From: Mytilus trossulus
Taxonomy: Eukaryota
Assembly: GCF_036588685.1 (NCBI RefSeq)
Contig: NC_086376.1
Span: 87,957,630 to 88,021,629 of the forward strand
DNA: 64,000 nt
Direction: 5' to 3'
Of this stretch, positions 1,906 to 53,300 are shown one piece after another. Position numbers and translations under genes: made by a program. The notes beneath the pieces were generated by a model. That model was not told the origin of the DNA, did not search any database, and saw nothing but the letters and a program-made list of their open reading frames with translations. The number at the start of each line of letters is the position of its first letter. Position 1 is the stretch's first letter.

Positions 1906-2198
1906 CACTGGATCGATGCCTCTGCTGGTGGACTATAAGTCCCCGAGGGTATTAACAGCCCAGTAGCCAGTACTTTTGTACTGGCATGAAAATACGGATT
2001 TTGTGTGTTATTTAAATTTGCTGTTTCAAAATGTTAGAAATTATTATAAATTGGCTATCCTTTTTGGAACTTTTGGATTATAGCTCTTCATCTTTCATGT
2101 AAGCTTTGGATTTCAAATATTTTGGCCACGAGCATCACTGAAGAGACATGTATTGTCGAAATGCGCATCTGGTGCAAGAAAATTGGTACCGTTAATTT
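1906..2198 (+). mobile_element. Retrozyme-like non-autonomous repeat, family B, ending in a hammerhead ribozyme
   Basis: 5' gtccccgagggtat..cagtag block and hairpin shared with 53000-53300; hammerhead at the 3' end; a fragment recurs inverted at 63690-63730. Confidence 0.75.
2132..2175 (+). ncRNA. Type I minimal hammerhead ribozyme, intact core, predicted cleavage after AUC (C2169)
   Basis: gcatca-CTGAAGA-gaca(tgtat)tgtc-GAAA-t(gcgc)a-TC-tggtgc; helices I, II and III all pair. Confidence 0.85.
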
Positions 2199-2789
2199 TT
2201 TTATATCATAATTATGTTTTCCTTATTTTTTATAAATAAAAATGGGTGTTTATGGTAGAAATTTGGTATTTCCTAAAAAAAGAATCTTAAAATCTTATAG
2301 ATTATAGATATGCGTTTCTTTTATATATCTTTATAATTATACATAAGAAAATACCTGTTCCAATTCAGGAATATGACAGGTGTTGTCCATTCGTTTGGTA
2401 TGCTTGTGCCTTTGATTTTGTCACTTGATTAGGAGTTTACCTTTTTGAATTTCTTTGGAGTATTTTTGTGATTTAATTTTTTGATTATTTTTGTGTCTCT
2501 AGGTAACTGTGTCATTCCCGTTTACGACACCTCCCTTTATTCACATACTTACACTTAATTCAATACAAGGGGATAAGTTGAATAATTAAGGAAGTTTATG
2601 TCCCATAACACATTTGCCATGTTTAATCATAATTCATATTAACATATTATTGTTGCAGTAATATATTGTTGTAGGTAGTTATTTTTTATCAAGATGAATA
2701 CAACCCGCAACGTTTAACAATTAATAAAGGAATGTATGTAACTTTTAATTTAATTTTACTTTTAAATTTTAATGCGTATTATATGCGTT

Positions 2790-3127
2790 AACTTTTCTAC
2801 ATTGGTTAGAGGTATAGGGGAGGGTTGAGATCTCACAAACATGTTTAACCCCGCCGCATTTTTGCGCCTGTTCCAACTCAGGAGCCTCTGGCCTTTGTTA
2901 GTCTTGTATTATTTGAATTTTAGTTTCTTGTGTACAATTTGGAAATTAGTATGGCGTTCATTATCACTGGACTAGTATATATTTGTAACGGGGCCAGCTG
3001 AAGGACGCCTCCGGGTGCGGGAATTACTCGCTTCATTGAAAACCTGTTGGTGACCTTCTACTGTTGTTTTTTATTTGGTCGAGTTGTTGTCTCTTTGACA
3101 CATTCCCCATTTCCATTCTCAATTTTA
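2790..3127 (+). mobile_element. SINE-like dispersed repeat
   Basis: Core gtttaaccccgccgcatttttgcgcctgttccaactcaggagcc has relatives at 1810-1875, 31520-31570, 36960-37040 and 61790-61870. The 3' tail gacctgtt.gtgaccttc...ttccattctcaatttta recurs at 53650-53745. Confidence 0.6.
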
Positions 3128-3588
3128 ACTATTGATTGAAAGAGCAAAAGTTTAACAAACCATTTCTCATAAAAACTAAAGATTGAACAATGCTAACCGG
3201 ACCAAATTCCGGGGGTAGCTAGTTCGCGTTCCACTTGTGCGCCCGTCGTATTATTCTTTTTGAACACGTTAACGATGCATGTCTATTAAAATCAATTTAA
3301 TTAAATTGAACAGAAGTGAAACGCTGTAACGATTCAGTAGTGCTTTGTTTCAACCCCCCGGTTTTATTTTTGTACTTCACTTGGCTTAAATATATATTTC
3401 ATTCTTGAGTGTGAATGTATAAATGCCGAAAGAAAGGGAAAGGTGAAACATATATTACCCTGTTGTAGTTTTTAAATCATAAAAATATGTAATAAGAATG
3501 CAACATGGGTTTAAAGGACAGGTGTTGTTCTCTGTCGTGGGTTGCTACAGTAACTGGTATTTGCAATATCATGTATCCAGGTACTTAC

Positions 3589-3903
3589 AATATATAGTTA
3601 GACTAACACGAGAAGAATTTCTTGAAGTAAAGTTGTTATCAGCAGAACAATATAAAAACGCGCCATTGTCTGATGCTTTAAACCGGTATGTAAGTTGACT
3701 GGTCAGTGTTATTATTCCTGATACATCACTGGAAATAGTGGTTGAAGACTTTAAAGTTACATTTTGTATGGCTCCCTCTGGGTTAATGATAACCCAAGAA
3801 ATCGATGCAGCTGGTCTACTTGTGACTGTACAATATACTGTTATGTCACGTGTCACATCGCTTGTTATGCTGGTATTCGAGATAAGTATATCAGTTATTG
3901 GAA
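3589..3903 (-). CDS. Ig-superfamily gene 1, coding exon 3 (C2/CD80-like Ig domain)
   Basis: ttttcag| acceptor, |gtaagt donor, 315 nt, phase 1-1. VYCTVTSRPAASISW...SQLTYRFKASDNGAFLYCSADN. Confidence 0.9.
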
Positions 3904-5986: not shown

Positions 5987-6355
5987 CTCTGACGAAAATG
6001 ACTGTGCTGGTACTGGCAAACACGTCAGATGAGGATCCGTCTCCATATTGAACTTGGCAGCGGATGAATTTATTGTGATAATTTTCACCAACATATAGAA
6101 TTGTTAAATTATATTCCCCCTTTGAAGAATCACAGGATGCGTTATATTTGGTGGATGAAACAGCACTTATTTGACAACCAGTGGAACCTCTGTAAAACAG
6201 GCCTACACTGGGAAGACCACCACTGTTCGTCTCGTCATAGAATGAGGTACTTCTCCAATTGTTTTGTACTGTTGTCTTGCACATAAACGTGCGTTGCTGG
6301 TTTATATCCACATATGCTGGTTCGGGGGGATACATTGTTGCAGTTAGTGCATCAA
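5987..6355 (-). CDS. Ig-superfamily gene 1, coding exon 2 (N-terminal V-like Ig domain with an extra Cys pair)
   Basis: ctactattag| acceptor, |gtaaac donor, 369 nt, phase 1-1. TFMCK..GCQ..ASCD..YNLTI..IRCQVQY. Confidence 0.85.
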
Positions 6356-6888: not shown

Positions 6889-6973
6889 CTTGCCAATAAA
6901 TCATTAATTGCGTCGCAAATATTATTCTGGCATAAAAACACAGTACATTCCGATAAGATGCTGACACGTGCAT
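6889..6973 (-). CDS. Ig gene 1, signal-peptide exon copy a (MHVSASYRNVLCFYARIIFATQLMIYWQ)
   Basis: ATG plus 28 codons and G|gtatgt phase-1 donor; joins in frame to exon 5987-6355; hydrophobic core. Confidence 0.7.
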
Positions 6974-11487: not shown

Positions 11488-11785
11488 AGCCTAGTAGTAA
11501 ACACTTCGGTGTTGACATGAATATCAGAAATGTGGTCATTTTTATAAATTTTCTGTTCACAAAACTTTGATTTTTTCGAAAAACTAAGGATTTTCTTATC
11601 GCAGGCATAGATTACCTTAGCCGAATTTGGCACAACTTTTTGGAATTTTGGTTCCTCAATGCTCTTCAACTTTTTACTTGTTTGGGTTTATGAATATTTT
11701 GATATGAGCGTCACTGATGAGTCTTATGTAGACGAAACGCGCGACTGGCGTACTAATTTATAATCCTAGTACCTTTGATAACTAT
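11488..11785 (+). mobile_element. Retrozyme-like repeat, family A (most complete copy here)
   Basis: Closely matches 19672-19895; UUCG hairpin at the 5' end and hammerhead motif near the 3' end. Confidence 0.8.
11708..11751 (+). ncRNA. Type I hammerhead motif with mutated cleavage triplet (GAC instead of GUC), probably inactive
   Basis: gcgtca-CTGATGA-gtc(ttatgta)gac-GAAA-c(gcgc)g-AC-tggcgt. Confidence 0.75.
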
Positions 11786-12534
11786 TGTCATAGATTGTGG
11801 TACTGAAATGACAGCTTATATAAAAATTCTAATATTTAGTCTAATATGAGACAGAGCAAGCCGTTTGTTGTTTCTTTACATTCTTGTTATGTGAATATTT
11901 ATAAGGAACCCAATCAGAAACGTTTTGATAATTAGTTTAAAAATCATCAATATATTCGATTGTTAAATTGAATAATCTGGCTTTTTTATATTCTTGTTTT
12001 TATTAATGTCCTCCGACTAATATGAAAATAAGTAGCGGTCGGAAGATAGAGGCACAGATATTTCGGCCTGTTATACGTTAACATAGGAACTTAAACGAGT
12101 GTTGTCTGATTGTAAAGATAGTTATGTAACTTTTGTAAACAATAAACAGAAGCATTAACATACAAATAAGTAATCTATGTTTATAATGTCTAAACAAAAA
12201 TTCCAGTAATGCGGTCTTTGTGTTTTCATCCACACCCTACCTTGATTTGCAACATAATTCAATTGTTTTTATTAAATACAATACAAAAATTAATTTTATA
12301 TTTGTGGACGATAATATTTAGTTTTTTTTTCTACTGGTTCCATATTATAATATATGTTATTAATTGATTCAGATTATTATTATCTCGTTTGATGGATTAA
12401 AGATCTGACCTGCTGACAATTAGGAAAATAGGACTCGACTTTTGCAATGAATATAAGTACTTAATGAATAGACGATAACAATGCAATCACAGTGTGCTGT
12501 AGTGGTGCAGTAAATGTTTTAATTAAAATTTCAG

Positions 12535-12839: not shown

Positions 12840-15800
12840 GTAAGGTACAAATAAAGTTTAATAACGTCGTCTTGTTTTGCCACGGATAAGATTAACTTCA
12901 ATGACACATGCTTAAAATATATGGTGTTATGTAATGAAGATTTGGATTTATATTTACAAAAATAATATTTCGATCGTATATGTTTTAGTATAGTGATTTG
13001 AGTAACGTTTCACACAAACAGAATTGAGAAAAACTATATTGTTTGTAACGCATACATGTTGTATTGAAAGATTTATAATAACCTTTTGTAATTCAACATA
13101 CTCGAGATGGTTCGCAAATGTTTGAGGACAAAGAGTCCTTAAATTTAAAATATAGTGTTAACATTTTTGCATATACCTACTGATCGCGTGAAAATCTTGA
13201 AATACGCTAAGGAAACTACTTCTTCCGATTGCAGGGGCAGGTGAAATTAAAAATCGAAAATAATCGTCAAATTCCGAATTTTGTCAGAAATGAACGTATT
13301 TAGACTGCTTTGTCAAGACAATATTTTCTCCAACCTTAACAATTCGATAGTTGATGTGTTCATTAGAATGCAGTCTATATGCAGACTCCAGTTTTATCTA
13401 ATACCTCTTAATCTTCATAAATACATTTCCTTATTTGTATTAGCAAACCCTTCAGAAATGTATAGTCCTCAATACTCTTCAATTTCGTAACTTATTTGGC
13501 TTTTAAAACTTGTTTAATTCGAGTGCCTTGGTGAGTCTTTTGTAGACGAAACACGAGACAAAATTTCAATCCTGCTATCTATGATTTATTTCCATGTTAA
13601 ATAATAGGACGAAAAGCGTCAAAATTAAAACCCCACTTATCTGACAGTTCCGTTTTATAAACAAATTTGGGTGAGCAACTCAAAAAAACACGGTTAGATA
13701 AAGTGAAATAATTCAGATTCAGCAGCAACACAGACATACAAAATGTCAAACACAACTGAATTCAAGGTAAATCAAACAGTCATAAAAAAGTAACAAAAAC
13801 ACACTGTTTTGTGTATTTTTTTCTACATACAGTCAAGATAGATATAATGCCTTATGCAGATTAAGTACAAATTAAGTAATTTTATATACAAAAAAAAAGA
13901 AAACATATAACACTGCGTGCGTCTGATTCGCACCTCTAAACTCCTGTGTCAGGAACACAAAAAGCCAAATAAAACCTAAAGCTTGGGTGCACAAATACTG
14001 ACCCTCAACCAGAGTCATACAATGAAAAGAAACGTATTAGTATAATGCAATGAAAATCGTATATCAATAGTACGCAATGTCAGCATATGTTATCTATAAC
14101 TCTGGATCATCCTGTATTTTGTAATATAGAACAAAATGAATGATTATCCATAACGTCTAAGTAGTGTCCGATGAATGTTTTGAGAAAAAGAACGAACTGT
14201 TTTTTGAAAAAATATTTACTCAAATTTTTTTTTCCGACAAGGATTGTTTTGTACAAAGTTTGATAAGCATCTGCTCTTGATTATTATATGAATCGATAAA
14301 TGTAAACCCAAGACGCGGTTACGTTTGAATATTTCTGCGAAGGTCACCAAAATTTATAATTTAAAAATCAAAATGGTTTCGTATGACATAGACTCAGACT
14401 CTGGTACTGATACAAATCATTTGTTACCAAACATGTTTGCAGTGCTCTCAAGTAAGCTTATCGAAACATGCTGATTACAAAGCATACCTTCCTACACTTA
14501 ATATCATTGTGTTCTGTGGGTCATAGAAAATTTTATAGTTTTAAACTTTACTAGAATACTCGATATTGTGCTATGCTTTAATCAAACAAAAGAGAGAAAA
14601 AAAAACAAAATATACAGTTATTGATTTAAATTTCAAATTGTGTTGAAATGTATTCTGCATGTACCATGCAGGGAGTGAACACAAGTTATCAATATGCCCA
14701 TAAATAAAACAAATTTCAAATAAATGTATCAAAAATGTTAATCGTCAGTACTTGTTTGCATTCTTTGATAAAGTTTTGCTCATTCTTATCTCGTCTGTTA
14801 AACCTATATTTGTCATAACTGTCCCTTTGGTATCTTTCGTCCCTCTTTTATCATAAGGAGGACAATGCTATTTCTTAACTTATTTGTAGGTAATTGACGC
14901 TAGCTTGTCTTGCCTTTGTAGGAATGGGAGTGTTGGTTAAAACATTTAACCTGTTATGTATGGCTGTTCATTTCCAAGTTTAACAAAAAGATTTAACAAC
15001 TAACCGATCGTTTTAACGTGCTTTTGTATGTTTCTTGTTCTTTAAACCTTGTAATACTAATTAACAAATTGTTGGTAATCACAAAATTTATTACAGCCTG
15101 TCAAGCTTGGAGACATTTAGATTTTGACATAAGCAATTCACTCTATTACCGACGAATGTTTTGCCTAGGTTGATTTGTTTTTTTGTTTCTGATATAATTT
15201 AGGATTCCTTACAATGACATCCAGTTAAAAAAAACGAATAATTGGATTTAAACTTCTTGGTGATTCTTTTGTAGACGAAACGCGCTCATGTCCAATATAT
15301 TATAAACCTGGTATCTCTGATGATTATTTTTATGTTAATTCTTTCCATAAAACTTACTAATACCTTTCTATAAATCACCATATGGTAGATGTATGCAATA
15401 TTCGAAATATGTACGTTGTTATTTTCATGAGTTATTATTCACGTTCTTATTCATCCCGTCATTGTATAATTGTGCTATGGTACATTTTTTTTTATTGTAT
15501 TTTACTTTTACTGACGTGCTTTGTCTATATGCCGTTCTGTTGTCTTTGTTGACATATTTGCTTGTTTTATAAAAATTTAGATTATAACACAAGTTTGACT
15601 GCCGAACCCCTATTTTTGATATTTACCTATAATGCCTATTTGTTTTGTTCACATATCAGCGTCAATATAAAGGAATGTTAGCGACTGTCATTTATGAGAG
15701 AGGTTTATAGAGTTACACAACTAGGTTAAATTCATAATTTTATATATATGAAAATGTGTGTACCAAGAATGAAATTTATGAGTTGATATCTATTCGATTG

Positions 15801-19040: not shown

Positions 19041-19671
19041 CCAAACCTTCTCCCTTTTTCTGAAACAATAGCATAGCATCACAACATAGAAAAACACACG
19101 ATAAAATATCAATTGGCAGAATTAACTCAATCAAAAAATGTAAATTAATACACAATGAACGAAGAAATTTGATCTGCGATATATGTTTGTGAGCGCCCAA
19201 GCATCTTCTTACCTGAAACAGTACAACACAAGAACAAACTAAATTTTTAAAATCAGTTGAAACATGCTTAACTCATCAGATGGATAAAAATAGAAATACA
19301 TCTAACAAACAAAAACCAGAATGAACATGGACGAGTACTTATACATCCCCGAACAAAAAGGTAATAAATACAGATATGAGAGCTGACGCAGTTACTGACA
19401 GCTACTTATCTTTTAACCGTCTATTTTAGTCAAATTATATGCACTTCACATTCAATTATGTCACCTCAGATACGAACACTATAATGGACTGAGGTGGACA
19501 AAGTATGAAAAACAGTAAACAGTTTACATGAACTTGAGAGATACATATGACTTAATTTTGAATACTTCTCTTCTTTGCATATAGGTTATCTGGCTTTCAA
19601 TGAAGACAGCCATTTCAAAAAAGATGATAAATGCCACTCAAATAAATATGCCCATGTTTTCAAGTTTTTGA

Positions 19672-19895
19672 TACAAAACTTTGAATTTATCGAAAAACTA
19701 AGGATTTTCTTATCCCATGAATAGAATAGATTACCTTAGCCGTATTTTTTGGAATTTTGGATCCTCAATGCTCGTCAACTTTGTTATTGTGTGGCTTTAT
19801 AACTATTTTGATATGAGCGTCACTGATGAGTCTTATGTAGACGAAACGCGCGTCTGGTGTACTTAATTATAATCCTGATACCTTTGATAACTATT
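19672..19895 (+). mobile_element. Retrozyme-like repeat, family A, 5'-truncated
   Basis: Aligns to 11560-11785. Confidence 0.8.
19817..19860 (+). ncRNA. Type I minimal hammerhead ribozyme, intact core, predicted cleavage after GUC (C19854)
   Basis: gcgtca-CTGATGA-gtc(ttatgta)gac-GAAA-c(gcgc)g-TC-tggtgt; helix I has three G-U pairs. Confidence 0.85.
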
Positions 19896-21137
19896 TTGTC
19901 TTCAGTCAGTTCAAATACACATCAACGTGTTCTCCTATATGAAGTTAAATCATGAAAATTATCGAAATGTATCGAAATACTTTTATATCCTGCACGAAAA
20001 ATACACGGTTGATGTGTTTCAGCGTTTGATGTTGCCATTGGATTAAGGACTCGGAGTTAATTATGTTGTGATTTAAATTTTTAATGTTGTTATGTTAGAA
20101 CACTTTCAATATTTTCAGTTTGACAATCGGAAACGTAACCATAGTATTATTTATCTATGAATTAACCCATATATTCATAAAAAAGGCAGATTCAAAATAA
20201 AACAACAGATCCTAAACTTCGATAATATTCATGATGGGTATGCAAATAGGAAAACACCTTGGAGTTTCAAATATTTAGGTCAAATATGTTTATCTCATCT
20301 TTGTCTGGACTTTTCTTGGTAAAATAAAATAAATTAAAACATGATGATGTCATGTTTCCTTGTGAGATAATATTCTAATTTTAAGCATTGTCCTCTTACA
20401 GAAGATGTTTGAAAATATCAACCAAAAAGGTTTTCAATGACATGTTATTTTAGATCCTGCACGAAAAAATACTAGCTTATCTCCTTATTCTGTAAACCTA
20501 CAGGTAAGGGAGGCAATTCAATAAAAAGGCTATTCACGTGATGGAACTTAAAAACAACATGATATCCAATGAAAAATAGAATAGTGCGTTAAACGATTAC
20601 CAAGTGGTTAACGCATTCAATTGCCAATGTTCACTAATAACTTACTAATAAGCCAAAGCAGGCATGAACACTGGAGATATACGGAAATTGTCAAAATTAA
20701 AAAAGTGCGCTTGTTGATGATATTTCTGTCATTTAGATTGATTAAGATGTGTGCTGGCAAATCAAACGTAGTATATCTGATCTGGGGACACATTTTAAAA
20801 AATTCCTTCAGATAAAGAGCTTATTATAACATGTTTCTTTTGTCTCTAGTTGGTGACTTCCATATTGTGAGGGAAAGGCTTCTGAGTAACCGAAAACAAA
20901 GAAAGGGTAAGAGAAACACCCACTATTTTGAAAAGCCACATCGAGTATGCATTATTGTCATAATTTTATTAATCTAAGCTGTATATTTTAAAGTTTTATT
21001 TATAAATACATGTTATAATCCCCTGACTATTGTCTGTCGAATTCAAATATGAAAAGACCGTTAGCTTTGGTATAAAAAACATATACAATTTTTTTTTCGA
21101 CATTAATCTCTAAAACAAAACAGAGGTAAATTCCGTC

Positions 21138-30562: not shown

Positions 30563-31889
30563 CTACAAATATCATATTTGAACAATTATCATAACACATA
30601 AAAGTTGTATAAAGAAAAATAAATATACGATAATACGCATGACATTCATAACGAGTTACTGTTATCATTTACAGTTTTTTTTTTACACTATCGCGATATT
30701 CTTATTTACCTTGCAATTCAGAATAAAATGAGATTCATCTTCGATGCTTTCGCATGTTTAGCTCAGACTTTGCTAAATTGGTCTCGATGAGCAGGCAATA
30801 CTTATCCTGTATATGCATATGACATCGCATCTTAAAGACTTTATGTGAATCCCTCATGGTTCGTTTGGTTACCTTGATTTGTCTCGCCTTGATCGATGTT
30901 CGAGAATTTTATATCGATGAAACTCAAGCTATTAAGAGAATCTGTTTGGCTGTTTTGCTGTAATTTCGAAACCTTTCTGATTGAAGACAATACATCTGAT
31001 GTCTCCTATAAGGAGATTGTCTAGCGCGCTACACTCTGAGACCTCTTTGGTAGTTTCGTAAGTAGTCTTTATCATAGTTAATACTCTGCAGAATTTACCT
31101 ATTTCTTTTTTTTCATTAATTTGTGTTCATACTATACATGTATATGCTTTGCTACATGTTTGCTACTGATCGAAAGCAAATAACAATCAATCAATCGAAA
31201 ACATTTGATTCGTTTCCTCTGTTTTAAAATACACATATCCTTATTTTTATTAAGATGTTCATTAAAAAAATGTGTTTTCAATTTTATTATTTTGTTACAA
31301 TGATTTCTCGTCATAACAAGAAGATTCTTAAATTAATATTAAAAATACAGTTTGAGCACATACCTACCGTTCATTTGAAGCAGTTGTTTTCACACAAAAA
31401 AGATCGTATTATACTAACACATACTTTTGTAGTTGGTATTTGAAAATAAACTTAATTTTAAAAAAACATTGTTTTCTTAAAAATAATAATTTTTGATTTC
31501 GGTCGTATGTATCTATTTAACAAGGTTCAACCCGCCTTTTTTCTTAAAATGTTCTGTACCAAGTCAGGAAAATGGCCATTATTATACTCAGTTCATTTTT
31601 GTGTGTGTTACATATTAATGTTGTGTTTCTGTTGTGTCATAGTTATCCTCTTATAGTTGATGTGTTTACCTAAGTTTTAGTTTGTAATCCGGATTTGTTT
31701 TGTTTTTTTTCTCAATCGATTTATGCATTTCGAACAGCCGTATACTACTGATGCCTTTCATTTCTATTGTAACTTGAAACTTATCAAAAAAGTTAATAAA
31801 TAACAGAAATAGAAAGTTTAACAAAAGTGACGATTATTGTATTAACAGTGGTATACTACTGTGGCCTTTATTTAACGTAAACAACTAAC

Positions 31890-33093
31890 CTATATCTATG
31901 GTCACATCTAGGTACGACTGCGGTTCATCTGGCAAGAATGGACGAAGATAGTATCCACCTATGTTAGCATACGTTGCATTACTCGCCACAAAGAGCAGTG
32001 GGAGAAGTCTGAAGTACTCATCCCTTGTTATAACTCCATCACTGATGTCTATAGGTATCTTTAACAAATCAACGTAAAAGGCAATGAAGAGGGATACTTC
32101 ATCTTTTACAACCCCTAACATGACGGAAATATGCTTGGGAAGAGGCTGTTTCATGAGCTCTGCTGGTGATTTGGAAATGAAACCATTTTTGTCGATTGTA
32201 GGTAAATGAGCCCTGATAAACAAAGGAGGGATCGGTATAGGAGGAATTTGTATTGCCGATACTACTGATGCTGGTAATGATCGTAGACATTCAATCTTAT
32301 CCTCTACTGAGGCCTGGTTACAACCAAGCTGCGTAGCAAAAGCATTGGCAGTAAAAAGTGCAACAGAAGGAGAATGAAAGGTAAATTTCGTATCAGCTGC
32401 TCCACTTTGAATGATTGCTTTTTGAAAATATGGGCGCGTAAAGTCGGATAGCATGTGATAATTTACACTAGCACCACCAGCACTTTGTCCAAATAAAGTA
32501 ATTTTATGCTTGCTTCCTCCAAATCTTCTCACGTTGCTATATATCCATTTGATTGCTAGTGATTGATCAAGCAGTCCCATATTACCAGGTGCATCTTTGT
32601 GGTCAAAATATAGAAAACCTAATGGTCCAGTTCTATAACTTATTGTAAAAACAATAGTATTTGTAAATGCAGCAATCACTTTAGGATCACTGCTGACTAC
32701 ATCCTCAGTAATGAATCCTCCTCCTACAATCCATATCATTGAGTGTTTGTGTCTACATCCTCCTTGAGGAATCCATGCATTTAGATACAAACAGTCTTCT
32801 CCTTGATTGGCAGCTGAAATATTAGAGGTAAAGAAAGCAGGCTGGGAACACGATTTAGCAAACTTCTGAGTGTATCTTGTTCCTCTCCATGGCCTTTTTG
32901 GAACAGGTTCCTTAAATCTTAAGACTCCAACTGGAGGTTCGGCAAATGGTATTCCTAAGAATGTATCTAACCTTTTACCAAGCACAATCTGAGTAAACCC
33001 TTTAATTGTTCCTGTTTTCGTATATATTTTTGTGTTATATGATGCACAATTGGTCACGAAAAAAAAGATCAAAGGAAAGCACGTTACCAACAT
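31890..33093 (-). CDS. Type-B carboxylesterase/cholinesterase-like A, exon 1 (signal peptide, GGG oxyanion hole, GQSAG, GVVKDE); protein about 545 aa
   Basis: FLGIPFAEPPVG.LRF, EDCLYLN, GNMGLLDQ motifs; ATG at 33093; G|gttagt donor. Confidence 0.95.
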
Positions 33094-34299
33094 TCTCAAA
33101 AACTTAATGATGATTGATGTGGTTGAACCGAGTCCTAGGTTGAAAGTGAATAATGTGGACTAGTCTGAAAAGCAAACACATATACTTAATAACTCCTGTT
33201 ACATTCCTTTAAAACATGTTTTGTAATTAACAGTTGGTTTTTTTTCACATTTTATATAAAACGCTGAATTTAAATGGGAATGAGAAACTCGTACCAAAAC
33301 CTTTTTAAGCAAGATGTACACTCATTAGGAAAAATAATGATATAGGACATTTGAAAAAAATATCATTCATCTTAATTACAATTTCTAGAAAATTATTTCA
33401 TTGAAGGTAAAATGATTCATTTCACCGATGCTTAGCATTGTCACCAAGACTGACGATCAAAGTCATACACGCTTTCGGTCAGATCATTTACATTTGTCCT
33501 AGTCAAATAAGTCATATACTGTTTACGTGTTGCTATTCTAGTCTAAATATTCTACTTTCTTTCATGTACATGTAGTACTCTTATAACCTGACCGGAGTTT
33601 CACTAACATAAGGGGTGTTTTCACCATTTACATTATCTTTCTTTTTATTTACATCATTTCACTGCTGTTTTGAGGGGCATTACTTATATTAATAAGTAAA
33701 ATAAAAAAAACATTTGACAAAACTCAAAAGTATCGGTGATAAAAATGGGGAAATAAACCAATTTATTTGATATGATTGATAGTAATAAAAAAAGACTTGA
33801 AAATGACATTCAATGCAGTGCTATGCACCATCTCAACCTCTCAATATTTTACTTTTACATTAAGCTCTGTATTGAAAACCTTTCTGTATCTTAGAGACGA
33901 AGAATAGCAATAAAAGCGCGTTTTCTTTGCTTTTTGTGCGTTTTTGCTGTACATGTTCTGATTTTGTATGATTTTTTTTTTTATTTACTGTTGTTTAAAA
34001 GGGACTTGAAAACGTGGAATGGTGATTATTGTTAGATAAATGTAACAATAACCACCATTTGAAACATTTTATTCGTAGCCAGTGAATCTTTTACCTAATT
34101 AATATAATGTTTATTGTCTGTAATTTGTCATGTCGGAAAATTTGTCAAATCTGATTACCAAAACAAGTATCTCGATTGTACGGATTTCAACCATCTTTCA
34201 CAGGTAACTACTATCTCATATTGTTCATAAACACGTTTTGGTCGTGATATGCATTTAAAATACATGATTATAAGCACCAATGCATCTTCAACATCATAA

Positions 34300-35044: not shown

Positions 35045-35212
35045 GGAGATAACTGTATTGTATTTTAAGCTTGGCCTTCGTAAAACGTAGATTTTACTGT
35101 CGCAAATATCCGTTTACCTATCTCCGCTCCGCGTCGCTAGGTAAACTCAATTTGCGACAGTAAAATCTACGTTTTACGAAGGCCAAGCTTAAAATACAAT
35201 ACAGTTATCTCC
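35045..35212. mobile_element. Foldback (palindromic) MITE, 168 bp
   Basis: 63-bp perfect arms ggagataactg...gtcgcaaat; inner stem gtttaccta/taggtaaac; loop tctccgctccgcgtcgc. Confidence 0.9.
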
Positions 35213-35552
35213 TAAATTATGACATTGACAAAGCCACCAATTTAAACTGACAATGTGACGTAACCAATACTTTGAATGGAACCGGTCGCTCGCAACAGAA
35301 GAAGGACAGCAATGGACTGGGTACGTATGTTTTACGTCGTCTTTTATGTACACCTAAATAATATAGTTAAAAATGTCGATAGGGTAAATGCATGTACTCT
35401 TCCACATGATGAAATTAGAATCTGAAGCTGATACTATCATCTTCTCTGTCAACGTTTCAATGTTGTTTTCGTCTTGCTTTATTAAAATCTTTTGTACATA
35501 ATAAAGGATCTGGTCAACAAACTCGTAATAGGTTCCAGAAGTACAACTGTAT

Positions 35553-35596
35553 ACGAAAGACGCGCGTTTCGTCAAGAAAAGATTCATCAGTGATGC
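35553..35596 (-). ncRNA. Degenerate hammerhead motif, family A repeat (35525-35655)
   Basis: gcatca-CTGATGA-atc(ttttctt)gac-GAAA-c(gcgc)g-TC-tttcgt; core intact, helices I and II damaged. Confidence 0.6.
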
Positions 35597-37616
35597 TCGA
35601 ATCGAAAAGTTTAAAAGAACAAATAACGTACGAAGTTTGATTGCATTAAGGACCCCAACATTTTATTGAGGACCCCAACAATTATCACTAATGCAGTTTA
35701 AGACATTCGTTGTTACCGAATGAGCAATTTGAAACTAAGGTTTAAGGGAACCGGATCTAGCAAGGACGTAACAATGTACCGTGAAATAACAATGTTTTTA
35801 TTCTCAATACATGTTAATAGATCTTTTCGGCTTTCTATTTCAAATTCACAGGCAGCTGGTGATTTTTTTCAGTTAATACAGCTAGCATCCTAGTTTTATT
35901 TATTGATAATAAGTGCGAAATCATATAAACTAACGTTCTTCAACCTGGCCTTTGGGTTTTCAGTTATATTAAACGAAGAAGAACCGGGCTTTTATGTCAT
36001 TGTTTTCCATGTGAGCAGCAATCTTTTATCACGGAATTAATTACAAGAAAATGCAATCTTTAGAATAGCGTATCAACAGTGAAATATGTACTCAAAAGGT
36101 AGACACTGCAGGTATGTTAGTTAAGTGAAATAAAACATTCATAATTGGCTAGCTGAAATCATTCCTTAATCGTAAATAAAGGCATTAGACTGACATATTT
36201 TTTTTTATTAGGTTCGATAGGATAGGTACGTTTGACATAGTCACAAAGTTTGGCTTGTTTTGTGAAAGATAATCATCTATTTTGATTAAAGCGTAAGGTA
36301 CATTTAAAGGATAATGCTAGCTTCTTCTCATACTTCATGAGAAGCCCATGTATACAGTCTGTCTAATGAGAGTACAATAACAAGAGTGTCGCAAAGTTTT
36401 TCCAATGGGAATGCCGATTGATTGTTGAAAATTAACAAATATCCTGTCAATTATAAAAAGACAAGCAATGATTTCATTTCCAGAGATGGGTTTAGTTTGA
36501 ATCAGAAGTGGTTTTACGAAGAATTATGTCGAGTTATCATTTTGATCTTTGAGTTTGAATGTCCCTCTGGTATCTTTCGCTCCTCCTCCTTAAGCTTATT
36601 ATCAAGGTATGGTTAATTTTTTGTATTCTTTTCTTTCATTTTTGTTTTAATGTCGTTTGTCTATATGCCTTATTTTTGTTTCATTGTTACATTTGACGTG
36701 GCTCTGTACTTCATATACATCCCGTCATTGTGTTATTGTAAATTTGTATATTCTTGATTTTCCTTTTGTGTGCTTTGTTTTATGTCCCTTTATGTGTTTC
36801 TTTGTTACGTTTTGGTTTTTTTTTATAGAGATTAAAGTTGTAACACAATATTGACTGTTGTACCCCAATGTTTTTAAAATTCTTACCTATTGTGTCTGTT
36901 TGTTTTGTTCACACATCGTTGTCAATATAAAATAATTTAAGGTGACTGTCATTTAAGTGAAAGGTTTAGCTAGCTTTAAAACCTTGTTTAATCCACTATT
37001 GTTTACATAGGAAAATGCCTGTACCAAGTCAGAAATATAACATTTGTTATCCATTCGTTTGTTGTGTTGTAACTTTTGATTTTATTATTTGATAAGAGAT
37101 TCTCCGTTTTGAATTTTCCTCGGTATGTTTGTCTTTTTACTTTTATTCTTTCCCTCATAAAACAAATATTGGTATCACTATTGGGTACTTTTTTGGGGGG
37201 GTAATCAAACTATGGCTAGTTCTTTCAATTTTTCTGTAGTTTAAAACGAGGTATATGAAAGTATCAGACTTTTACCGATGATCAAATCTCGTAAATCGGT
37301 TAGAAAGAGACAAATATTGTTGACAAAAAAAATCGAAGAAGTGGCAGAAACTCCAATTGAACGCAGGCCGGACAGGAGGTAAGGGACGCAATAGGTAAAA
37401 TTAAAAATCAGACGACTATATTGGTATCTAAAGTTTAGGACCGCAAAACATTCTAGTAGTAAGATATGACACTGACATATCGTATTTATCAACTTATACT
37501 TTTTTATATAACTAGTACTGTTTTTGGTTTAAATTATAACATATTATTTACAAAAGTTGTATGTACTCTAACATATCTTTCAAATTTTTAACTATCTACA
37601 TATTTATCATTGACAG

Positions 37617-39200: not shown

Positions 39201-42200
39201 TGGGGTACGTGTTGCTTATTCTTTCGTTTTCTATGTTGTTTCATGTGTACTATTGTTTGGCTGTTAGTCTTTGTCATTTTTAGTCATGGTGTTGTCAGTT
39301 TATTTTCCATTTATGTGTTTGACTGTCCCTCTGGTATCTTTCGTCCCTCTTTTAATGAATAACTGTTTGAGTCCAAATTAAGATTAACTGGTATTGAACT
39401 TATGCTTGAACCTAATATATGATTGGTCGATAAGTATAAAACACTTAACATATACTTGATAATATAATGGCAAAAACAGTGATAAGTTTGTTTCATTTTT
39501 TACCATCTTAAAAGTTCGTTTAAATGACTGCTTATGTTTTATTTTGTCATAAGTCTGCCCTAATGTCATATACAATTCTTAAAGTTCCAGCATTAATATA
39601 ATACAGCATTTGAGGTTGACATATATTATCATAAAACTGTCAATTAAAAACACTTATCATTGGGATTGTCAGAAAGTAGACAAAAAATGAAGGATGTGCG
39701 AGGTATTCTCCATGAACCTACAACGTATCAATGTTAACAGTAATGTAAATATCGCAATATTTCTGAGATAACATATAAAGTTATATACAATGAAGTGTAA
39801 ACTACTATTATTTTTCGTAGGACTTATATCGTTTCTATAAAATGATAATAGTAATCTTAACATCTTGATTAAGTTTCAAAGATGAGTAAAGCCATATTAT
39901 TATATTATTGCTGGACCCTTTCGTCAAACATCCATAAGTTTGCTGTACTATATATAATCATATACGTACAATCGGTTTGCATGACATACCTTGAAACGAA
40001 AACAACAATGTTAGAACGCTTAAACCAAATTTTGAACATCCAGTAGACATAGACATTAAGTGTTAACAGTTTTTAGCTGTGTATATACGAGGCTAAGTAA
40101 CATCTGTCATACGAGCTTCAGTGAATTTTATTCTATTGTGTTTCGAACCGAGCACACATACTGCTAAATAGATTTTCTTTTTATCCTGTCACTTATTTTT
40201 AACATTGTTTTTCTTTGCTTTCGACGACAGAAAAGCTCACATTTATTGCTTTTGTTTTCGATCTGAAATCCATTAATATCCACGACACAGTATTCACACA
40301 TTCAGCTGATGACGAATGAGCAGAACAGAATCTCGCATGGTCAACAATTATGCATTGCTCAAATTTAATAGTTACTCATTAAAACATAACAACTGTTTTC
40401 AACAGTGTGTAATTATATAGCATATAATCTATTGCAATAAAAATTCATAATTTCAAATAAAATTTGTAGATTTAGCTAACTAAGTCCTTATATTTGTATA
40501 AAATAACATTCGTTTATAGTGGAACATTGTTTTAACAATGAATTAGCTGCAACCAAAATTTCCTTGCTAGTCCCTCTCTGTGATCACAAATAGATAACTC
40601 TGGCTCATTTCCCAATCAATCTATCATGAAAGGAAGTAAAATTTATTCATAGTCTATTTCAAAATTATAAAAAGTTCTTTATATTGGTATGTAAAAATTT
40701 TAAACATTTCAAATTTATGAAATTATATTCGTACATCAATTGTTCTGATACATCAATAACAAAAACTGAAATATATTGCATTGATTCATTTTGTAATTAT
40801 TCAAAATTATATCAGAAAGCTAAACATAATTATAAAAAAAATGAACCTGTTAAGGGGAGACAATTCTCGTATAACTTTTTCGAATTGGCACATAATACCA
40901 CGGAATGTCACTCATCATACAAATGGCACATCCATATAATTAATTAACTGCGCAATCGCGCTCCACCTTCAATGATGATTCTGAATTATAAATATAACCA
41001 AAATTTGTTAATCTATAGATAGTGAAGACTAATGAAAGCTAACCCACTGTAAAAATATTTTTTTGCACTTTTTTAAAACTTCCTCAGGAAAAATTCTCTA
41101 CCCACTTGACTTTCAAAGCTCAAAATTAACGTTTTTACAGAATATTTGAATAAAGTAGTTACAGATTATTCGCTTCTCAAAGTGTAAGACGCAATAAAAA
41201 TCGTATACTTGCACAATCTTACCGAAATACGGATTTAATTAAGTCCTAAACATTTTGACATTTCTTCGTATATCTTTATCGAAAACCGGTTTAAACAAAT
41301 CACACGTACGTGTTAAGATCCGACTAAATACCTATTTCCCGATATGGTCAGGTAAAATTGCTAAATTATAACAAAACATTGTCCGATATAAGGCAAAAAG
41401 GTTTGATTTGTCTGACGCTTCAGAGGTTCGAACTGTCCGTACATTCAGTGATTATTGACATTGTTGCTTTGATGATTTTGTAATTTTTACCTTCAAATTT
41501 TAAACTTGAAGATTGACGCAAAAGAACATGGAGTTAATTTTAATGTTCATGTTTGTCAATGAGCAAAAAAATGGGTCGATGATCGGAGACTAGAACTTAC
41601 AAAGACACAGAAATACGTGATTGGAATGCGATTTCAGTGCACATTCTTATGGCAAGTAAGTTCGTACAACACTCGTCGGCAGCAATACACAAATACAGAC
41701 CGGCAGTGGGCGGAGTTTAAAACAATACCTATATAGTATACAAATACAGGCTAGCAATATATGTTAAGATGTTCATGTTTGATAAGTCAATCAATTGTAG
41801 GATAAACAATAATCTTCAAACCAAACTACTAACAACTTTGCCTGAGTTTGGACGTTACTTTTCTAAATAATGTATGAACTTATTAATAGAGAATTAAAAA
41901 AAACAATTTGTACAAATTCATGATTAATGTACCTGCAACAGGAACATTTAAATTCAAATGTTTGAAATCTCCAATGGTGTATAACACTTGAACACGTGCA
42001 TAACTATATGACTAAAAGCAAATTACAAATACAGCCAAACCTATCAAACTGTAGGTCCATTTTGACTAAGGGAGTTAGAACCTAAGTTTCCTGCTAATTT
42101 ATAAATTCATCAAAAACTAAAAACAACACAATGTTCTCAAAAAACACAGATTAGGAATATTTTCATTAACAATATTCAAATATTTGAATTTTCATAATAA

Positions 42201-48674: not shown

Positions 48675-49039
48675 CTGCAATTATCATATTTAAACATTTA
48701 TCAAACAACAAAACTTTTAATATACTATTTACATTTTTAAAGCGTTATTTTTATCATTAAATGTGTTTCACTATCGTTATAATGAATAAATGTTATTGCT
48801 ATTCAAGATGCACAGTATGTTTGTGGCAAAACACAATTTACAATAAATTATTTCACAAAATGCCTAAATCACGATATTAACATACAGAAAGAATAGATTT
48901 CATTCGAGTTTTGAATAACAATTTGTTTTATAACAGTAAAGGTTAGGCATATTGTAAATATGGTTCAATGATTTGCAAAATAACCATCATTTTGCATTAT
49001 CAATTGAATCGTAGCAATTTGTTCTTTACTAAGAACTTT

Positions 49040-49175
49040 TATAAATTTTGGATCATGAACTCTCTTCAACTTCGTGGCTTTTTTAACTTTTTTATCGAGC
49101 GTCACTAATGAGAAGTTTGTAAATGAAACACGAGTTTGGCGTTCAAAATGTTAATCCTGGAAACAATGACGAGTT
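49040..49175 (+). mobile_element. Decayed family A retrozyme-like fragment (similar ones at 13470-13590 and 15250-15325)
   Basis: ctcttcaacttcgt..gagcgtcactaatgag..gaaacacgagtttggcgt; hammerhead core mutated. Confidence 0.6.
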
Positions 49176-49350
49176 AATTGGTACTTGACAATAGAAATGG
49201 AATGCAGTATAAAGAAATAACCGACTGAATTTATTTAAAAAAAAAATATCAGTATAGTTTAAAAATGTAAAACTAAAGTTAAATGACAGAAATAAAACAT
49301 TGTGCAAAACTGGACATTATTTCATAAATATCTTAATGTTAACGACTAAC

Positions 49351-50554
49351 CTATGTTTATGGCGACATCTAAGTATGACCGCGGTTCATCTGGTAGGAAT
49401 GGACGAAGATAGTGTCCAGCGATTTTAGCATAAGTTGCATTGTTCGCAGCGACGGCAAGTGGGAGAAGTCTGAAGTACTCATCCCTGGTTATAACTCCAT
49501 CATTGATGTCTATAGGTATCTTCAGCAAATTAACGTAAAAAGCCATAAAGAACGATACCTCATCTTTTACAACCCCTAACAAAACTGGTATATGTTTGGG
49601 AAGAGGCTGTTCCCCGAGCTCTATTGGTGATTTAGAAATGAATCCACATTTGTCAATTGTAGGTAAATGAAACCTGATAAACAACGGAGGGTTCGGAATA
49701 GGAGGAATTTGTATTGCCGACACTGCTGATGCTGGTAATGATCGAAGACATTCAATCTTATCCTCTACTGAGGCCATGTTACAACCAAGCTGCTCGGCAA
49801 AATCATTAGCAGTTTTAAATGCTACAGAAGGGGAATGATAGCCAAATTTCGTATCAGCTGCTCCACTTTGTATGATTGCTTTTTGAAAATATGGGCGCGT
49901 AAATTTGGAGTGCATGTGATAATTCACACTAGCTCCGCCAGCACTTTGTCCAAATAAAGTTATTTTATGCTTACTTCCTCCAAATCTTCTCACGTTGTCA
50001 TATATCCATTTGATTGCTAGTGATTGATCAAACAGTCCCATATTACCAGGAGCATCGTAGTGGTCAAAATATAGAAAACCTAACGGTCCAGTTCTGTAAC
50101 TTATTGTGAAAACAATAGTATCTGTATATGCAGCAAAAGCTTTCGGATCAATACCAATAACATTCATAGTAAGGAACCCTCCTCCAACAATCCATACCAT
50201 TGTATGTTTGCGTTTACGTCCTCCTTGAGGAATCCACGCGTTTAGGTATAAACAGTCTTCACCTTGGTTGGCTGCAGGAATATTAGTGGTAAAGAAAGTA
50301 GGCTGGGAACACGATTTAGCGAACTTCAGAGTTTTTCTTGTTCCTCTCCATGGCCGTTTTGGAATAGGTTTTTTAAATCTTAAATTTCCGACTGGAGGTT
50401 CGGCAAATGGGATTCCTAAGCATGTAATCAACTTTTTACCAAGTACAATCTGAGTAAACCCTTCAATTTTTCCTATTTTCGTTCTTATTTTTGTATTTAC
50501 TGATGTGCAATTGGTTACTAGAAAAACAATTAAAAGAAAGCACGGTGCAAACAT
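49351..50554 (-). CDS. Type-B carboxylesterase/cholinesterase-like B, exon 1 (GQSAG, GVVKDE)
   Basis: Same motifs and 1204-nt length as A; G|gttagt donor. Confidence 0.95.
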
Positions 50555-52140
50555 TCTCCAAAGTATAAATGAGGATTATTGTTGTCGAACCGAGTCAAAG
50601 ATTCAAACTGAAAAATATTGACAACTATTCTAGAAAGTCAAAACATTTACCTAATAACTCTTGTAACATTTGTTTAAACATGCATTTTAAAAAGTGTTTT
50701 GCTCTTTTTAGTAATTTATTCACGATACTAAATATCCATTTGGCCGATGCATGTACATGTACGTGCCACTCCTGACGTTTCAAGATTTCAAGGATTGTTA
50801 GCAAGATGTTACATAGTAAATTAAAAATGTATTGTACAGCAGAATATACAATGAAATCATATATAATATAAACATTTTTAAGAATGAACACTAATCTGAA
50901 TAATAGTTTCTGAGTGAAAAATTTAAGAAGATAGATTTTTTTCAATGGATGCAAACATTCTTAAAAAATTAGGATTGGTATTGTCAAACCGAGTCCAAGG
51001 TTAAAACTGAATAATATGGAAAACTAGTCTTGAAAGTAAAAAATCCTGTAACATTTGTTTAAAACATGTATTTTTAACATGTATTTTGCCATTTTATCAT
51101 AAATTGTACTAAATATTTAATTTGAATATGTGAATGTTGTTTACAGATTTCAAGGTACCTACACCTATGTAACCAAGTGTACAATCATAAGCAATTAAGC
51201 TTCACCTATTGAAAATCAAAACGATATCATATATGATATAAGACAATTTAATTTTTTTTTATCAAAGATGGGATTTTCAGTAATGAAAAAAACGTGAGGA
51301 TTCCATTCAAGCCAGTGCTAGGAGCCGTCTCGACTTTAGAATAAAAAAGATGATATTGTATTATTGCCAATAAGACAACTCTTTAGATGAGACCAAATGA
51401 CACAGGAATTAAGAGCTGTATTTCAATGTGATGCCTTTCAACAATGAGCAAAGCCTATACCGCAAAGTCAGTTATAAAAGGCACAGAAGTGACAAATGTA
51501 AAACAATTCAAACGAGAAAATATATTTACAAAAAATAAACGGAAAACCAATATGTAACATATCAATACACGACAATCATTGAATAACAGGCTTCTGTCTT
51601 TATTTTAGCTTGCCATGAGGACAAAGTTGTATTCTTATTTTTGTGTTCAAAGTCGAAAGCCTCTTTAAAACTGTGAGATGAAGATCTACACAAAACACTG
51701 CTGTTCCTCTGCCTTTCCTGTGTTTTTGCTGTGTGTGTACTTATTTTGTGTGATTGATGGCTAACACATATTCTTTTGATTTTTTTCTATTGTTTCAATT
51801 GTACTTTCAAACGACGAACAGTTACAGTAGAAATGTGTAAATAGTTACTTACCAATATCTTCATTGGAAGATTTCATTCGTATCCAGTCAGACAATCGTG
51901 TCTTTAATTCAGTAAACTTTTATTGTTTTTTTATTCGTCATTTCGATAAATTTGTATTAATCTACCTAACAAAACAAGTATCTCGAAATGAATACGGATG
52001 TTATTATCTTTCACAGGTAACTCATGTAATGTAGTACTGTTGCCTTAATGCTCATATCATCCAATAGCATGTTGTCGTTCTGATATGCACATACAATACT
52101 TGAAGCAAAGCACCAATGCATCAGCAGCATCATAGAGGTA

Positions 52141-52341
52141 CTGTGGATTCATGTTTTTTTCTTTTAATATCAAAATTCACTGATTTTGTTAGGACAGGTG
52201 AACCACGAAATTAAAAATCAACGAATGACAAATTCTTATGGACCTGTATGTAGTCAAAACCACGAAATTTAACATCCAAGAACATGTTGGTTTTCTTTAA
52301 TCGACAAAAATTAGTACCGATGAAAATAACTAAATCCACAG
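52141..52341. mobile_element. Tc1/mariner-type MITE
   Basis: ta|ctgtggatt ... aatccacag|ta; TA target duplication; internal ccacgaaatt repeats. Confidence 0.75.
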
Positions 52342-52999
52342 TATTTGAAAATGTATCGGTAAACATGTTTTTGTGTGTTTATGTGATAAAACTAGGGGCA
52401 TAATTCTTTTAAAATAACAGTAGATCACCTTCCCTTATTATATATATGTTCTGAGATATTGCTGATATCGGGCCATAACTCTTTTTATAAAAGACGACCG
52501 TCCACCATTATAGAACGTGTCCAATATATTGTATTTAGTAAAGCATAGTAAAGTTTTATAAAAATGTGTCAAGAAGCCAGTGAGAGCACCAACGGATAAA
52601 TTTTCCATATACGTTATATTTCCCAGGGGAGTAACTTTTTCAAACAGAACATATCACACTAAAAATGAGAGTCGGCTATACAAATTCCTCGATCGACAAA
52701 TACCGACTTTACTCAAATTTTCATATTAAATTCATTTCATTCCAAATCATAATAAGTCTAAAATAATTATTTTACAATGTATAGGCTCGTAACAATGTTT
52801 AAACATTTTGTGTGTATTTCAGTCTAGATGCCATCTAGTAAATCACAGAGGTTACACACGATATAAACATATATATATAGAGATACAAACACGATAAATT
52901 TAAAACTGCCAACTAGACATTCTATTTTTTTTTAATAATAATCACTCCTTATCCATGCGTTACCCATTTTCATCTCTAGCTAAAATATTGAAAACAACA

Positions 53000-53300
53000 C
53001 GTTATTACTTTCTTGCGTCCGAAGCGCTTTTCTGGATTTACCTTCATCAGGAACGCTCAAAGCCAAACATTTGAAATCCGAAGAAGCATAAGTACCGAAA
53101 CCGTTGAAGAGCTGTATGTCAAAAATACCTAAAATAAATAGCCAAATTCATCTAAAGCCAACTTTGCCTGAGGGAGTTGAAACCTTAGTTTCTTAATAAT
53201 TTATAAATTTATAAACGGACAAATTTTGGTAAAGTTTGTTAAATCATGTCAGTACCGAAATACTGACTACTGAGCTGATGATACCCTCGGGGACTGATAA
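53000..53300 (-). mobile_element. Retrozyme-like repeat, family C
   Basis: Same layout as families A and B: gtccccgagggtatc block, UUCG hairpin, gctcttcaac, then hammerhead. Confidence 0.75.
53015..53056 (-). ncRNA. Type I hammerhead variant with atypical helix II, predicted cleavage after UUC
   Basis: gcgttc-CTGATGA-a-gg(taaat)cc-a-GAAA-a(gcgc)t-TC-ggacgc. Confidence 0.7.

Follow-up and report, generated by a model that had tools for sequence, protein, structure and literature searches.

The hammerhead motifs scattered through a 64,000-nucleotide stretch of the Mytilus trossulus genome (contig NC_086376.1, positions 87,957,630 to 88,021,629; hereafter, the window) are very probably copies of three sister lineages of a mussel non-LTR hammerhead retrozyme, a non-coding, non-autonomous element of about 350 nt for which a mechanism involving RNA circles and reverse transcription is proposed. 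The lineages are designated A, B and C. A first-pass annotation of the window had suggested that B and C may be less described than A. C does look undescribed, but the published family is B, and A and C both seem to be undescribed sister lineages of it.

The copies, fragments and hammerheads found are listed below in window coordinates. Real array copies served as references in place of consensus sequences.

1894..2202, + strand: family A copy of about one unit, monomer 27 to 33 of the next unit, 80% identical to an array copy
1906..1990, + strand: stem-loop domain of this A copy, with a long imperfect hairpin and, after it, a second one
2132..2175, + strand: A hammerhead, core intact, 12/12 pairs, AUC, predicted cut after 2169, 68.3 bits
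9874..9917, − strand: possible ninth hammerhead, decayed and A-like, CTGAAGATACATGT..., weak (14.7 bits, E 0.06)
11488..11786, + strand: family B copy, 5′-truncated, monomer 98 to 41, 93% identical to an array copy
11708-11751, + strand: B hammerhead of the 11488..11786 copy, U16.1 to A (GAC), predicted dead
13466..13585, + strand: old family B fragment, 73%, with a hammerhead remnant at 13522-13559 mutated in core and loop
15258..15329, + strand: family B 3′ fragment, 78%, 5′-truncated inside the hammerhead core
19671..19896, + strand: family B copy, 5′-truncated, monomer 167 to 42, 87% identical to an array copy
19817-19860, + strand: B hammerhead of the 19671..19896 copy, intact, GUC, predicted cut after 19854
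35530..35658, − strand: old family B fragment, 75%, with a hammerhead at 35553-35596 carrying G10.1 to A and lacking the 3′ strand of helix I
41927..42113, − strand: old C-like body fragment, 68%, no hammerhead remaining
49034..49160, + strand: old family B fragment, 72%, with a hammerhead at 49099-49142 carrying G5 to A and a mutated GCGC loop
52981..53299, − strand: young family C copy, 99%, monomer 72 to 40
53015-53056, − strand: C hammerhead of the 52981..53299 copy, family-intact, UUC, A.A at 10.1/11.1, predicted cut between 53021 and 53020
54557..54591, − strand: family B 3′-terminal mini-insertion of 35 bp, monomer 7 to 41, 100%, ending at the fixed 3′ terminus of B
63675..63731, − strand: family A body fragment, 86%

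Hammerhead-type sequence or a remnant of it was read at all eight positions where CTGAnGA...GAAA motifs had been annotated. The literal motif is present at five of these (2138, 11714, 19823, and 35567-35590 and 53029-53050 on the reverse strand), and the core is complete at three (A at 2132, B at 19817 and C at 53015 on the reverse strand) and broken at the other five, as scored against the type I core (C3 U4 G5 A6 N7 G8 A9, G12 A13 A14, A15.1-U16.1 and H17). The core at 13522 reads CTTGGTGA, the core at 49099 reads CTAATGA and the site at 15255 is 5′-truncated within the core. The claim that the motifs lie at the 3′ ends of repeats or their fragments holds, each being located 33–41 nt from the 3′ end of its repeat copy. 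The search for CTGAnGA...GAAA returned 10 matches in the window compared to 3.56 ± 1.77 in shuffles, and in none of the 100 shuffles were as many obtained.

All eight sites are recovered by a covariance model derived from families A, B and C. After the A site at 2132, the best scores belong to 19817 (62.1 bits), 11708 (59.8 bits) and 53015 on the reverse strand (59.8 bits), followed by the decayed sites 35555 on the reverse strand (30.2 bits), 49099 (17.0 bits), 13532 (9.2 bits) and 15261 (7.9 bits). At gathering thresholds, Rfam reported no hammerhead in the window, and at E ≤ 10 it gave B copies only, all below the cut-off, with A and C absent. The best match, the B hammerhead at 19817 (Hammerhead_1, RF00163), scored 31.1 bits, short of the 34-bit cut-off. 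The short helix III lowers the score; 34 bits is a database threshold and not a biochemical criterion. The copies in the window are solo insertions or fragments, fossils rather than active loci.

Genome-wide, exact matches to the cores number 17,626 for B, 5,088 for A and 895 for C, and a looser hammerhead motif occurs 33,941 times, compared to zero for a reversed-pattern control. On many chromosomes, the repeats form head-to-tail arrays with one motif per unit and periods of 352 bp (A), 356 bp (B) and 350 bp (C). The units abut directly and have a GC-content of 36.6–38.9%. The A, B and C monomers are collinear homologues, about 70–72% identical over some 300 nt. No ORF of at least 130 aa was found in or beside the units at about 90 sampled loci with flanks of 1–1.5 kb each. 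The repeats thus display the features of animal non-LTR retrozymes: head-to-tail units in the range of 170–400 bp, one type I hammerhead in each, a non-coding sequence, low GC-content and no LTR, primer-binding site or polypurine tract. A loose core pattern applied to metagenome and viral contigs gave 215 loci, 214 of which lack the helices and are chance matches; the remaining one is a B-like fragment in a metagenome, probably bivalve DNA.

The cleavage triplets had been annotated correctly and are AUC in A, GUC in B and UUC in C, with copy 11708 reading GAC instead of GUC owing to the U16.1 to A change. The annotated sequences of helices I and III were also correct on reading, as were those of helix II, except that this helix in B comprises 4 bp (GUCU/AGAC) rather than 3. 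Core nucleotides are invariant across 37 distinct genomic rows, and the three helices surround the core in the type I arrangement, open at helix I. As had been claimed, the helices differ between the families and stay paired, with compensatory changes across the three lineages: 95.6% of helix cells are paired, compared to 79.6% in shuffles (0/500 as high) and 19–40% with slid partners, and both sides have changed at six pairs, distributed over helices I, II and III. Two inner pairs of helix II were read by eye and stand outside the computed count, because the model failed to re-align the shorter helix II of family C. The covariation is based on only three independent lineages, and the variation within families is uncompensated decay. 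The first-pass annotation had spoken of at least three selected lineages; three do co-exist, but the word “selected” rests on the comparison of these three, given the decay within each. A search for a fourth lineage covered motifs whose helix II starts differently (322 and 621 matches) as well as diverged copies, and it was rejected since both proved to derive from A, B or C by single uncompensated mutations.

The exception to the pairing is an A.A combination at 10.1/11.1, at the base of helix II, in family C. A G10.1-C11.1 pair is present in nearly all hammerheads, and the activity of the C-type ribozyme is consequently uncertain. The 5′ end of the unit contains an 85-nt stem-loop domain that is 83–90% identical between families, compared to 48–57% for the body, and is more conserved than the ribozyme itself. 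Its hairpins recur in the centroid folds of all three families. The loop of the second hairpin reads UUCG in the array copies and UUUU in the A copy at 1906..1990, and the UUCG hairpin shows compensated changes.

These two features are what would be expected if the hammerheads of A, and especially those of C, were no longer needed, with the elements spreading via the domain recognised by reverse transcriptase alone and the motif owing its intact look chiefly to the youth of the copies. Among the C copies sampled, most are indeed 97–99% identical, and the insertion of a Penelope-like element was reported to need no hammerhead cleavage in vitro (PMC11167929). However, the ribozyme core is fully invariant between lineages even though the bodies have diverged as far as stated above, and substitutions in the helices are compensated. 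Moreover, helix II is unchanged in a C-like copy that shares only 69% identity with the modern C unit, which indicates that the C-type motif has persisted over a long history. A dispensable ribozyme is, hence, unlikely. In the A copy at 1894..2202, the 3′ 150 bp are 97% identical to a dispersed A subfamily.

The retrozyme interpretation is also supported by the anatomy of the insertions. Across a sample of about 70 insertions, the 3′ end lies at a fixed monomer position, 33 in A, 41 in B and 40 in C, that is, 33–41 nt beyond the cleavage site, whereas the 5′ ends fall anywhere and sizes range from 35 bp to multimers. The 85-nt domain adjoins this boundary, directly 3′ of it. A fixed 3′ terminus combined with arbitrary 5′ truncation is the signature of target-primed reverse transcription and not of recombination; the copies, dispersed and sharing these termini, bear the hallmarks of mobilisation by reverse transcription. 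The position of the fixed boundary beside the conserved domain matches internal initiation by a Penelope-like reverse transcriptase. An excess of insertion 5′ ends at the cleavage site would be a genomic trace of cleavage in vivo; the raw counts were 88 compared to 28, but the excess shrinks to only about 1.7-fold once the differing chance of a flank mismatch is corrected for.

Ordinary satellite DNA, expanded by unequal crossing-over with no RNA intermediate and bearing a hammerhead that is incidental or serves transcript processing only, could account for the long homogeneous arrays (e.g., about 26 units at C14:37.00 Mb). It would also agree with the lack of target-site duplications, none of which were found above the control (mean longest shared word 5.3 in both). 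This origin is nevertheless highly improbable, in view of thousands of dispersed solo copies and fragments across all chromosomes and of a single precise 3′ terminus shared by pieces truncated at arbitrary 5′ points, down to 35 bp. Equally hard to credit is the origin of the repeats as solo pseudo-LTRs or other pieces of autonomous Penelope-like elements rather than as an independent non-autonomous family: Penelope-like elements do carry a hammerhead near the 3′ end and tandem copies, and vertebrate retrozymes were derived from pseudo-LTRs according to a 2026 preprint, but the arrays contain 350-bp units only and no reverse transcriptase or GIY-YIG frame adjoins the repeats in the window or at any of the approximately 90 sampled loci (1–1.5 kb flanks). 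Elsewhere in the genome, there are many GIY-YIG ORFs, with open frames of up to 1056 aa, some of them paired about 4.28 kb apart; these resident ORFs are a possible partner of the retrozymes.

Among the closest known systems is the retrozyme of M. galloprovincialis (Cervera & de la Peña 2020, PMC7229834). Type I hammerhead non-LTR retrozymes of mussels yield abundant circRNAs; those of the B-type ribozyme make up as much as about 1% of mussel RNA, and the consensus published for cloned M. galloprovincialis circRNAs ends in the family B ribozyme (PMC7229834). The annotated statement that retrozymes giving circular RNAs had been reported in mussels is sound for family B. The published ribozyme is the same as that of family B, GAGCGTCACTGATGAGTCTTTTGTAGACGAAACGCGCGTC, except for one base of loop 2, and both variants occur in M. 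trossulus; as here, the units measure 350–390 bp and form tandem arrays of low GC-content. The M. galloprovincialis paper describes two near-identical ribozyme variants and 4,561 motifs in a draft assembly, compared to about 34,000 in the chromosome-scale assembly used here. Families A (AUC) and C (UUC) go beyond the published family, having other helices and units only about 70% identical to B. The motif had been annotated as the minimal type I hammerhead; type I and the short palindromic helix III are shared with that form, but the mussel motif was assigned by its describers to canonical type I and not to the “minimal” Penelope variant (PMC7229834).

Satellite 2 of newts and salamanders and the axolotl retrozymes similarly comprise tandem units of about 330–350 bp with type I hammerheads that act as double hammerheads, where the short helix III works through dimers, and give monomer RNAs in both linear and circular form. 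They are unrelated in sequence to the mussel repeats, whose helix III forms a perfect 8-nt palindrome in each of the three lineages and for which dependence on dimers is predicted from modelling. Penelope-like elements likewise have a hammerhead near the 3′ end, tandem or partly tandem insertions, 30–40 nt between the ribozyme and the insertion end, a reverse transcription start beside a stem-loop and no clear target-site duplications (PMC4209133, PMC8557442, PMC11167929), whereas the retrozymes described here have a 350-nt unit without an ORF. Schistosome Sm-alpha and other SINE-like hammerhead repeats are also short and non-autonomous, with a type I hammerhead, a defined 3′ end and 5′ truncation; in contrast to these, the mussel units are joined precisely head to tail into multimers and lack an A-rich or simple-repeat tail.

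In folding predictions for A and B, the dimer reaches its minimum energy as a double hammerhead whose intermolecular helix III spans 8 bp. For isolated segments, the fold of lowest energy is not the single-motif hammerhead. Whole monomers fold no better than shuffles (z from −0.3 to −1.2), so a rod-like, highly self-paired circle is unsupported for these units.

According to the proposed mechanism, the arrays would be transcribed into multimeric RNA, in which adjacent hammerheads would pair via the 8-nt palindrome of helix III (AUGCGCAU, ACGCGCGU or AAGCGCUU), and the paired double hammerhead would cut after AUC, GUC or UUC. The B-type ribozyme self-cleaves at about 0.1 per min and its RNA is ligated by RtcB (PMC7229834); this host ligase, a step published for family B only, would close the monomers into circles. 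A Penelope-like reverse transcriptase would then bind the conserved stem-loop domain and start the cDNA at the nucleotide just 5′ of it. Penelope-like reverse transcriptase is known to initiate internally in a stem-loop and to leave a tail of 30–40 bp (PMC11167929), and hammerheads have been located close to the 3′ termini of such elements (PMC8557442). An internal start on a circular or tandem template would give copies that are complete or multimeric and share a fixed 3′ end; the variable 5′ ends would arise from synthesis that stopped early. It is tentatively suggested that the 85-nt domain may be the cis signal for the internal cDNA start by a resident Penelope-like reverse transcriptase, that circles or tandem RNAs may exist because an internally initiating enzyme then copies the whole unit, and that family C may represent a naturally propagating A.A hammerhead.

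Retrozymes are a major natural source of circRNAs in animals. Three diverged natural versions in one genome reveal which parts of the element are constrained: the ribozyme core in its sequence, the ribozyme helices in their pairing only and the stem-loop domain as an almost invariant sequence at the insertion boundary. Combined with the fixed 3′ terminus of the insertions, this pattern leads to a testable model of Penelope-like internal initiation on a circular or tandem template. The long-read assembly holds about seven times more motifs than the draft genome behind the published count, and families A and C supply natural variant ribozymes, the A.A variant included.

Hammerhead-type sequence was found by direct reading at all eight positions listed in the first-pass annotation of the window. 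The sites, together with a weak ninth candidate, are the following:

2132, family A, intact, 68.3 bits with the covariance model
11708, U16.1 replaced by A (triplet GAC), 59.8 bits
13522, mutated core, reads CTTGGTGA
15255, truncation within the core
19817, family B, intact, 62.1 bits
35553 (-), hammerhead-type sequence
49099, mutated core, reads CTAATGA
53015 (-), family C, intact, 59.8 bits
9874-9917 (-), weak ninth hammerhead candidate, covariance model

Only the three copies marked as intact match the pattern of their own family. At 11708, the replacement abolishes the A15.1-U16.1 pair and breaks the NUH rule. A literal search of the window for CTGAnGA...GAAA, the form in which the motif had been annotated, gave 10 matches versus 3.56 ± 1.77 in shuffles, none of which reached 10; five of the eight sites are among these matches, while the mutated or truncated cores at 13522, 15255 and 49099 do not conform to it. 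Rfam at gathering thresholds reported zero hammerheads in the window, and at E ≤ 10 family B copies only, the best being 19817-19860 (Hammerhead_1, 31.1 bits, below the cut-off of 34). A covariance model made from genomic copies of families A, B and C, three lineages of hammerhead retrozymes, recovered all eight sites, the decayed ones with 30.2, 17.0, 9.2 and 7.9 bits. The observation of eight sites is genuine and lies far above chance expectation.

The annotated helix sequences and cleavage triplets (AUC, GUC and UUC in A, B and C) were correct on re-reading.

Base pairs of the hammerhead helices in the three families (helix I from the outside inwards; the helix II loop is 5 nt in each)
A: helix I G-C, C-G, A-U, U-G, C-G, A-U; helix II GACA/UGUC; helix III inner pair U-A
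B: helix I G-U, C-G, G-C, U-G, C-G, A-U; helix II GUCU/AGAC; helix III inner pair C-G
C: helix I G-C, C-G, G-C, U-A, U-G, C-G; helix II (A)GG/CC(A); helix III inner pair A-U

The claim that pairing is kept between families was borne out: over ten pairs, 95.6% of cells are standard pairs versus 79.6% in shuffles (0 of 500 as high), and slid partners, used as a control, pair in 19–40% of cells. Six pairs are changed on both sides yet still paired, and the core nucleotides are invariant in 37 distinct genomic rows. Within each family the rows are closely related, so the covariation effectively reflects three independent lineages; changes inside a family represent decay rather than covariation. 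By lineage, pairing fails only in C, with A.A at 10.1/11.1, a position where hammerheads usually have G-C. A C-like copy with 69% identity to the modern unit also carries A.A, which is therefore old in the C lineage.

The assembly measures 1.30 Gb, with 14 large chromosomes and 32% GC, and the window lies on contig C4. Genome searches with the window copies revealed head-to-tail arrays on many chromosomes, whose units repeat every 356 bp in B, about 352 bp in A and 350 bp in C, beside numerous dispersed copies. The pattern CTGANGA-N9-22-GAAA-N-GCGC-N-TH has 33,941 matches genome-wide and 0 in the reversed control; exact family cores number 17,626 for B, 5,088 for A and 895 for C. No fourth lineage was found among the remaining genomic matches, all of which are single uncompensated mutants of A, B or C. 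Real array copies, excised between successive cleavage sites, are homologous and collinear, with 70–72% identity over about 300 nt and a GC-content of 37–39%. No reverse-transcriptase or endonuclease reading frame adjoins the repeats in the window or at about 90 loci. The window A copy (1894-2202) has only 80% identity to array units, while over its final 150 bp it shares 97% identity with many dispersed copies (e.g., G000:C10:3995948-3996147); hence, family A has at least two sub-lineages differing in the body. A B-like fragment with an intact hammerhead core also occupies the end of ENA metagenome contig ERZ887851 NODE-36222 (L144; 2015-2203), where it probably represents bivalve DNA within an environmental or host-associated sample.

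Elements of exactly this type have been described in Mytilus galloprovincialis, with type I hammerheads numbering about 5,000, placed in 350–390 bp tandem repeats, self-cleavage at about 0.1 per min, circularisation by RtcB and circular RNAs that make up as much as about 1% of the total RNA (Cervera and de la Peña, NAR 2020, PMC7229834). The two ribozyme 'families' published there (2,880 and 1,681 motifs) are described as essentially one sequence. The published cloned-circle consensus ends in the family B ribozyme, so B is the family already described. A and C differ from it in helices II and III, N7 and triplets, and a literature search found no description of either. Thus, the element kind and one of its three families are known, and A and C appear undescribed, which corrects the earlier suggestion that B and C may be less described than A. 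In each of the three lineages, helix III is formed by a perfect 8-nt palindrome. For A and B, the minimum-energy structure predicted for two strands pairs them as a double hammerhead through an intermolecular helix III of 8 bp; a hammerhead fold of the single motif is not the predicted minimum. Published evidence of cleavage and circles exists for B alone (PMC7229834), and we infer both for A and C.

About 70 solo copies, fragments and array ends were mapped onto reference units. Every mapped insertion has a single family-specific 3′ end, at position 33 past the cleavage site in A (...GTTAATTTTATT), 41 in B (...TTTGATAACTATT) and 40 in C (...TTTTCAATATTT). At their 5′ side the insertions begin at any point of the unit, and they measure between 35 bp and many units. 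The window holds 11 such segments, including the following:

54557-54591 (-), 35-bp B terminus

Neither an A-rich tail nor a detectable target-site duplication was found at the insertions. Such a combination of one fixed 3′ end with 5′ truncation at arbitrary points is characteristic of target-primed reverse transcription and speaks against satellite amplification at the DNA level alone.

When the three families are aligned, conservation peaks outside the ribozyme, in a block of about 85 nt that starts directly past the insertion terminus. Between-family identity is 83–90% in this domain, versus 48–57% in the body, 47–52% in the tail and 46–69% in the ribozyme region. The domain folds into a long imperfect hairpin and a second hairpin with a UUCG loop and three compensated pairs, both present in the centroid folds of A, B and C; complete units do not fold better than their shuffled counterparts. 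The domain start (monomer start, e.g., window 1906-1925), CACTGGGTCGATGCC, resembles a polymerase III box B (GGTTCGANNCC), and the domain might thus double as an internal promoter.

Penelope-like elements carry hammerheads near their 3′ ends, and among them the Naiad clade is the dominant one in bivalve genomes (Craig et al. 2021, PMC8557442); vertebrate retrozymes have been traced to pseudo-LTRs of such elements in a 2026 preprint. For a Penelope-like reverse transcriptase, internal initiation of cDNA has been shown within a stem-loop that lies downstream of the hammerhead of the element; the start site shares no homology with the nicked DNA, and this accounts for the 30–40 bp 'tail' of these elements (Frangieh et al. 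2024, PMC11167929). The insertion anatomy of the mussel retrozymes fits this scheme, and we infer that they are copied by an internal start from the conserved domain. The Penelope-like enzyme would bind the domain and begin copying at the nucleotide directly preceding it, and a circular or tandem RNA template would allow a whole unit or several to be copied. The genome holds many GIY-YIG frames, open up to 1056 aa. Some endonuclease matches, set within 1056-aa frames, form recurrent pairs with a spacing of about 4.28 kb:

G000:C10:30946589 and 30950866, GIY-YIG frame pair
C45:94529 and 98805, GIY-YIG frame pair
C9:66826679 and 66830955, GIY-YIG frame pair

These pairs look like young tandem Penelope-like elements and are a candidate enzyme source for the retrozymes.

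Other features of the window are as follows:

1105-1578 (-), 157-aa open frame with immunoglobulin-type domains (C2-set_2, Ig_2)
31885-33099 (-), 49346-50554 (-) and 58081-59271 (-), carboxylesterase-family frames (Pfam COesterase)
35079-35178, near-perfect 100-nt inverted repeat, both strands matching the mir-368 model (33 bits, below the cut-off of 58)

The three open esterase frames (about 400 aa, E 1e-92 to 1e-95) form a tandem cluster of paralogues with several retrozyme fragments between them. The family A copy at 1894-2202 adjoins the immunoglobulin-domain frame on the opposite strand. The inverted repeat is more likely a foldback or MITE-like element than a microRNA gene.

What is new for these mussel retrozymes is two sister lineages, A and C; a motif count roughly seven-fold higher in a long-read assembly; a hammerhead variant of long standing whose helix II has A.A at its base; and a fixed insertion terminus adjoining a nearly invariant stem-loop domain.
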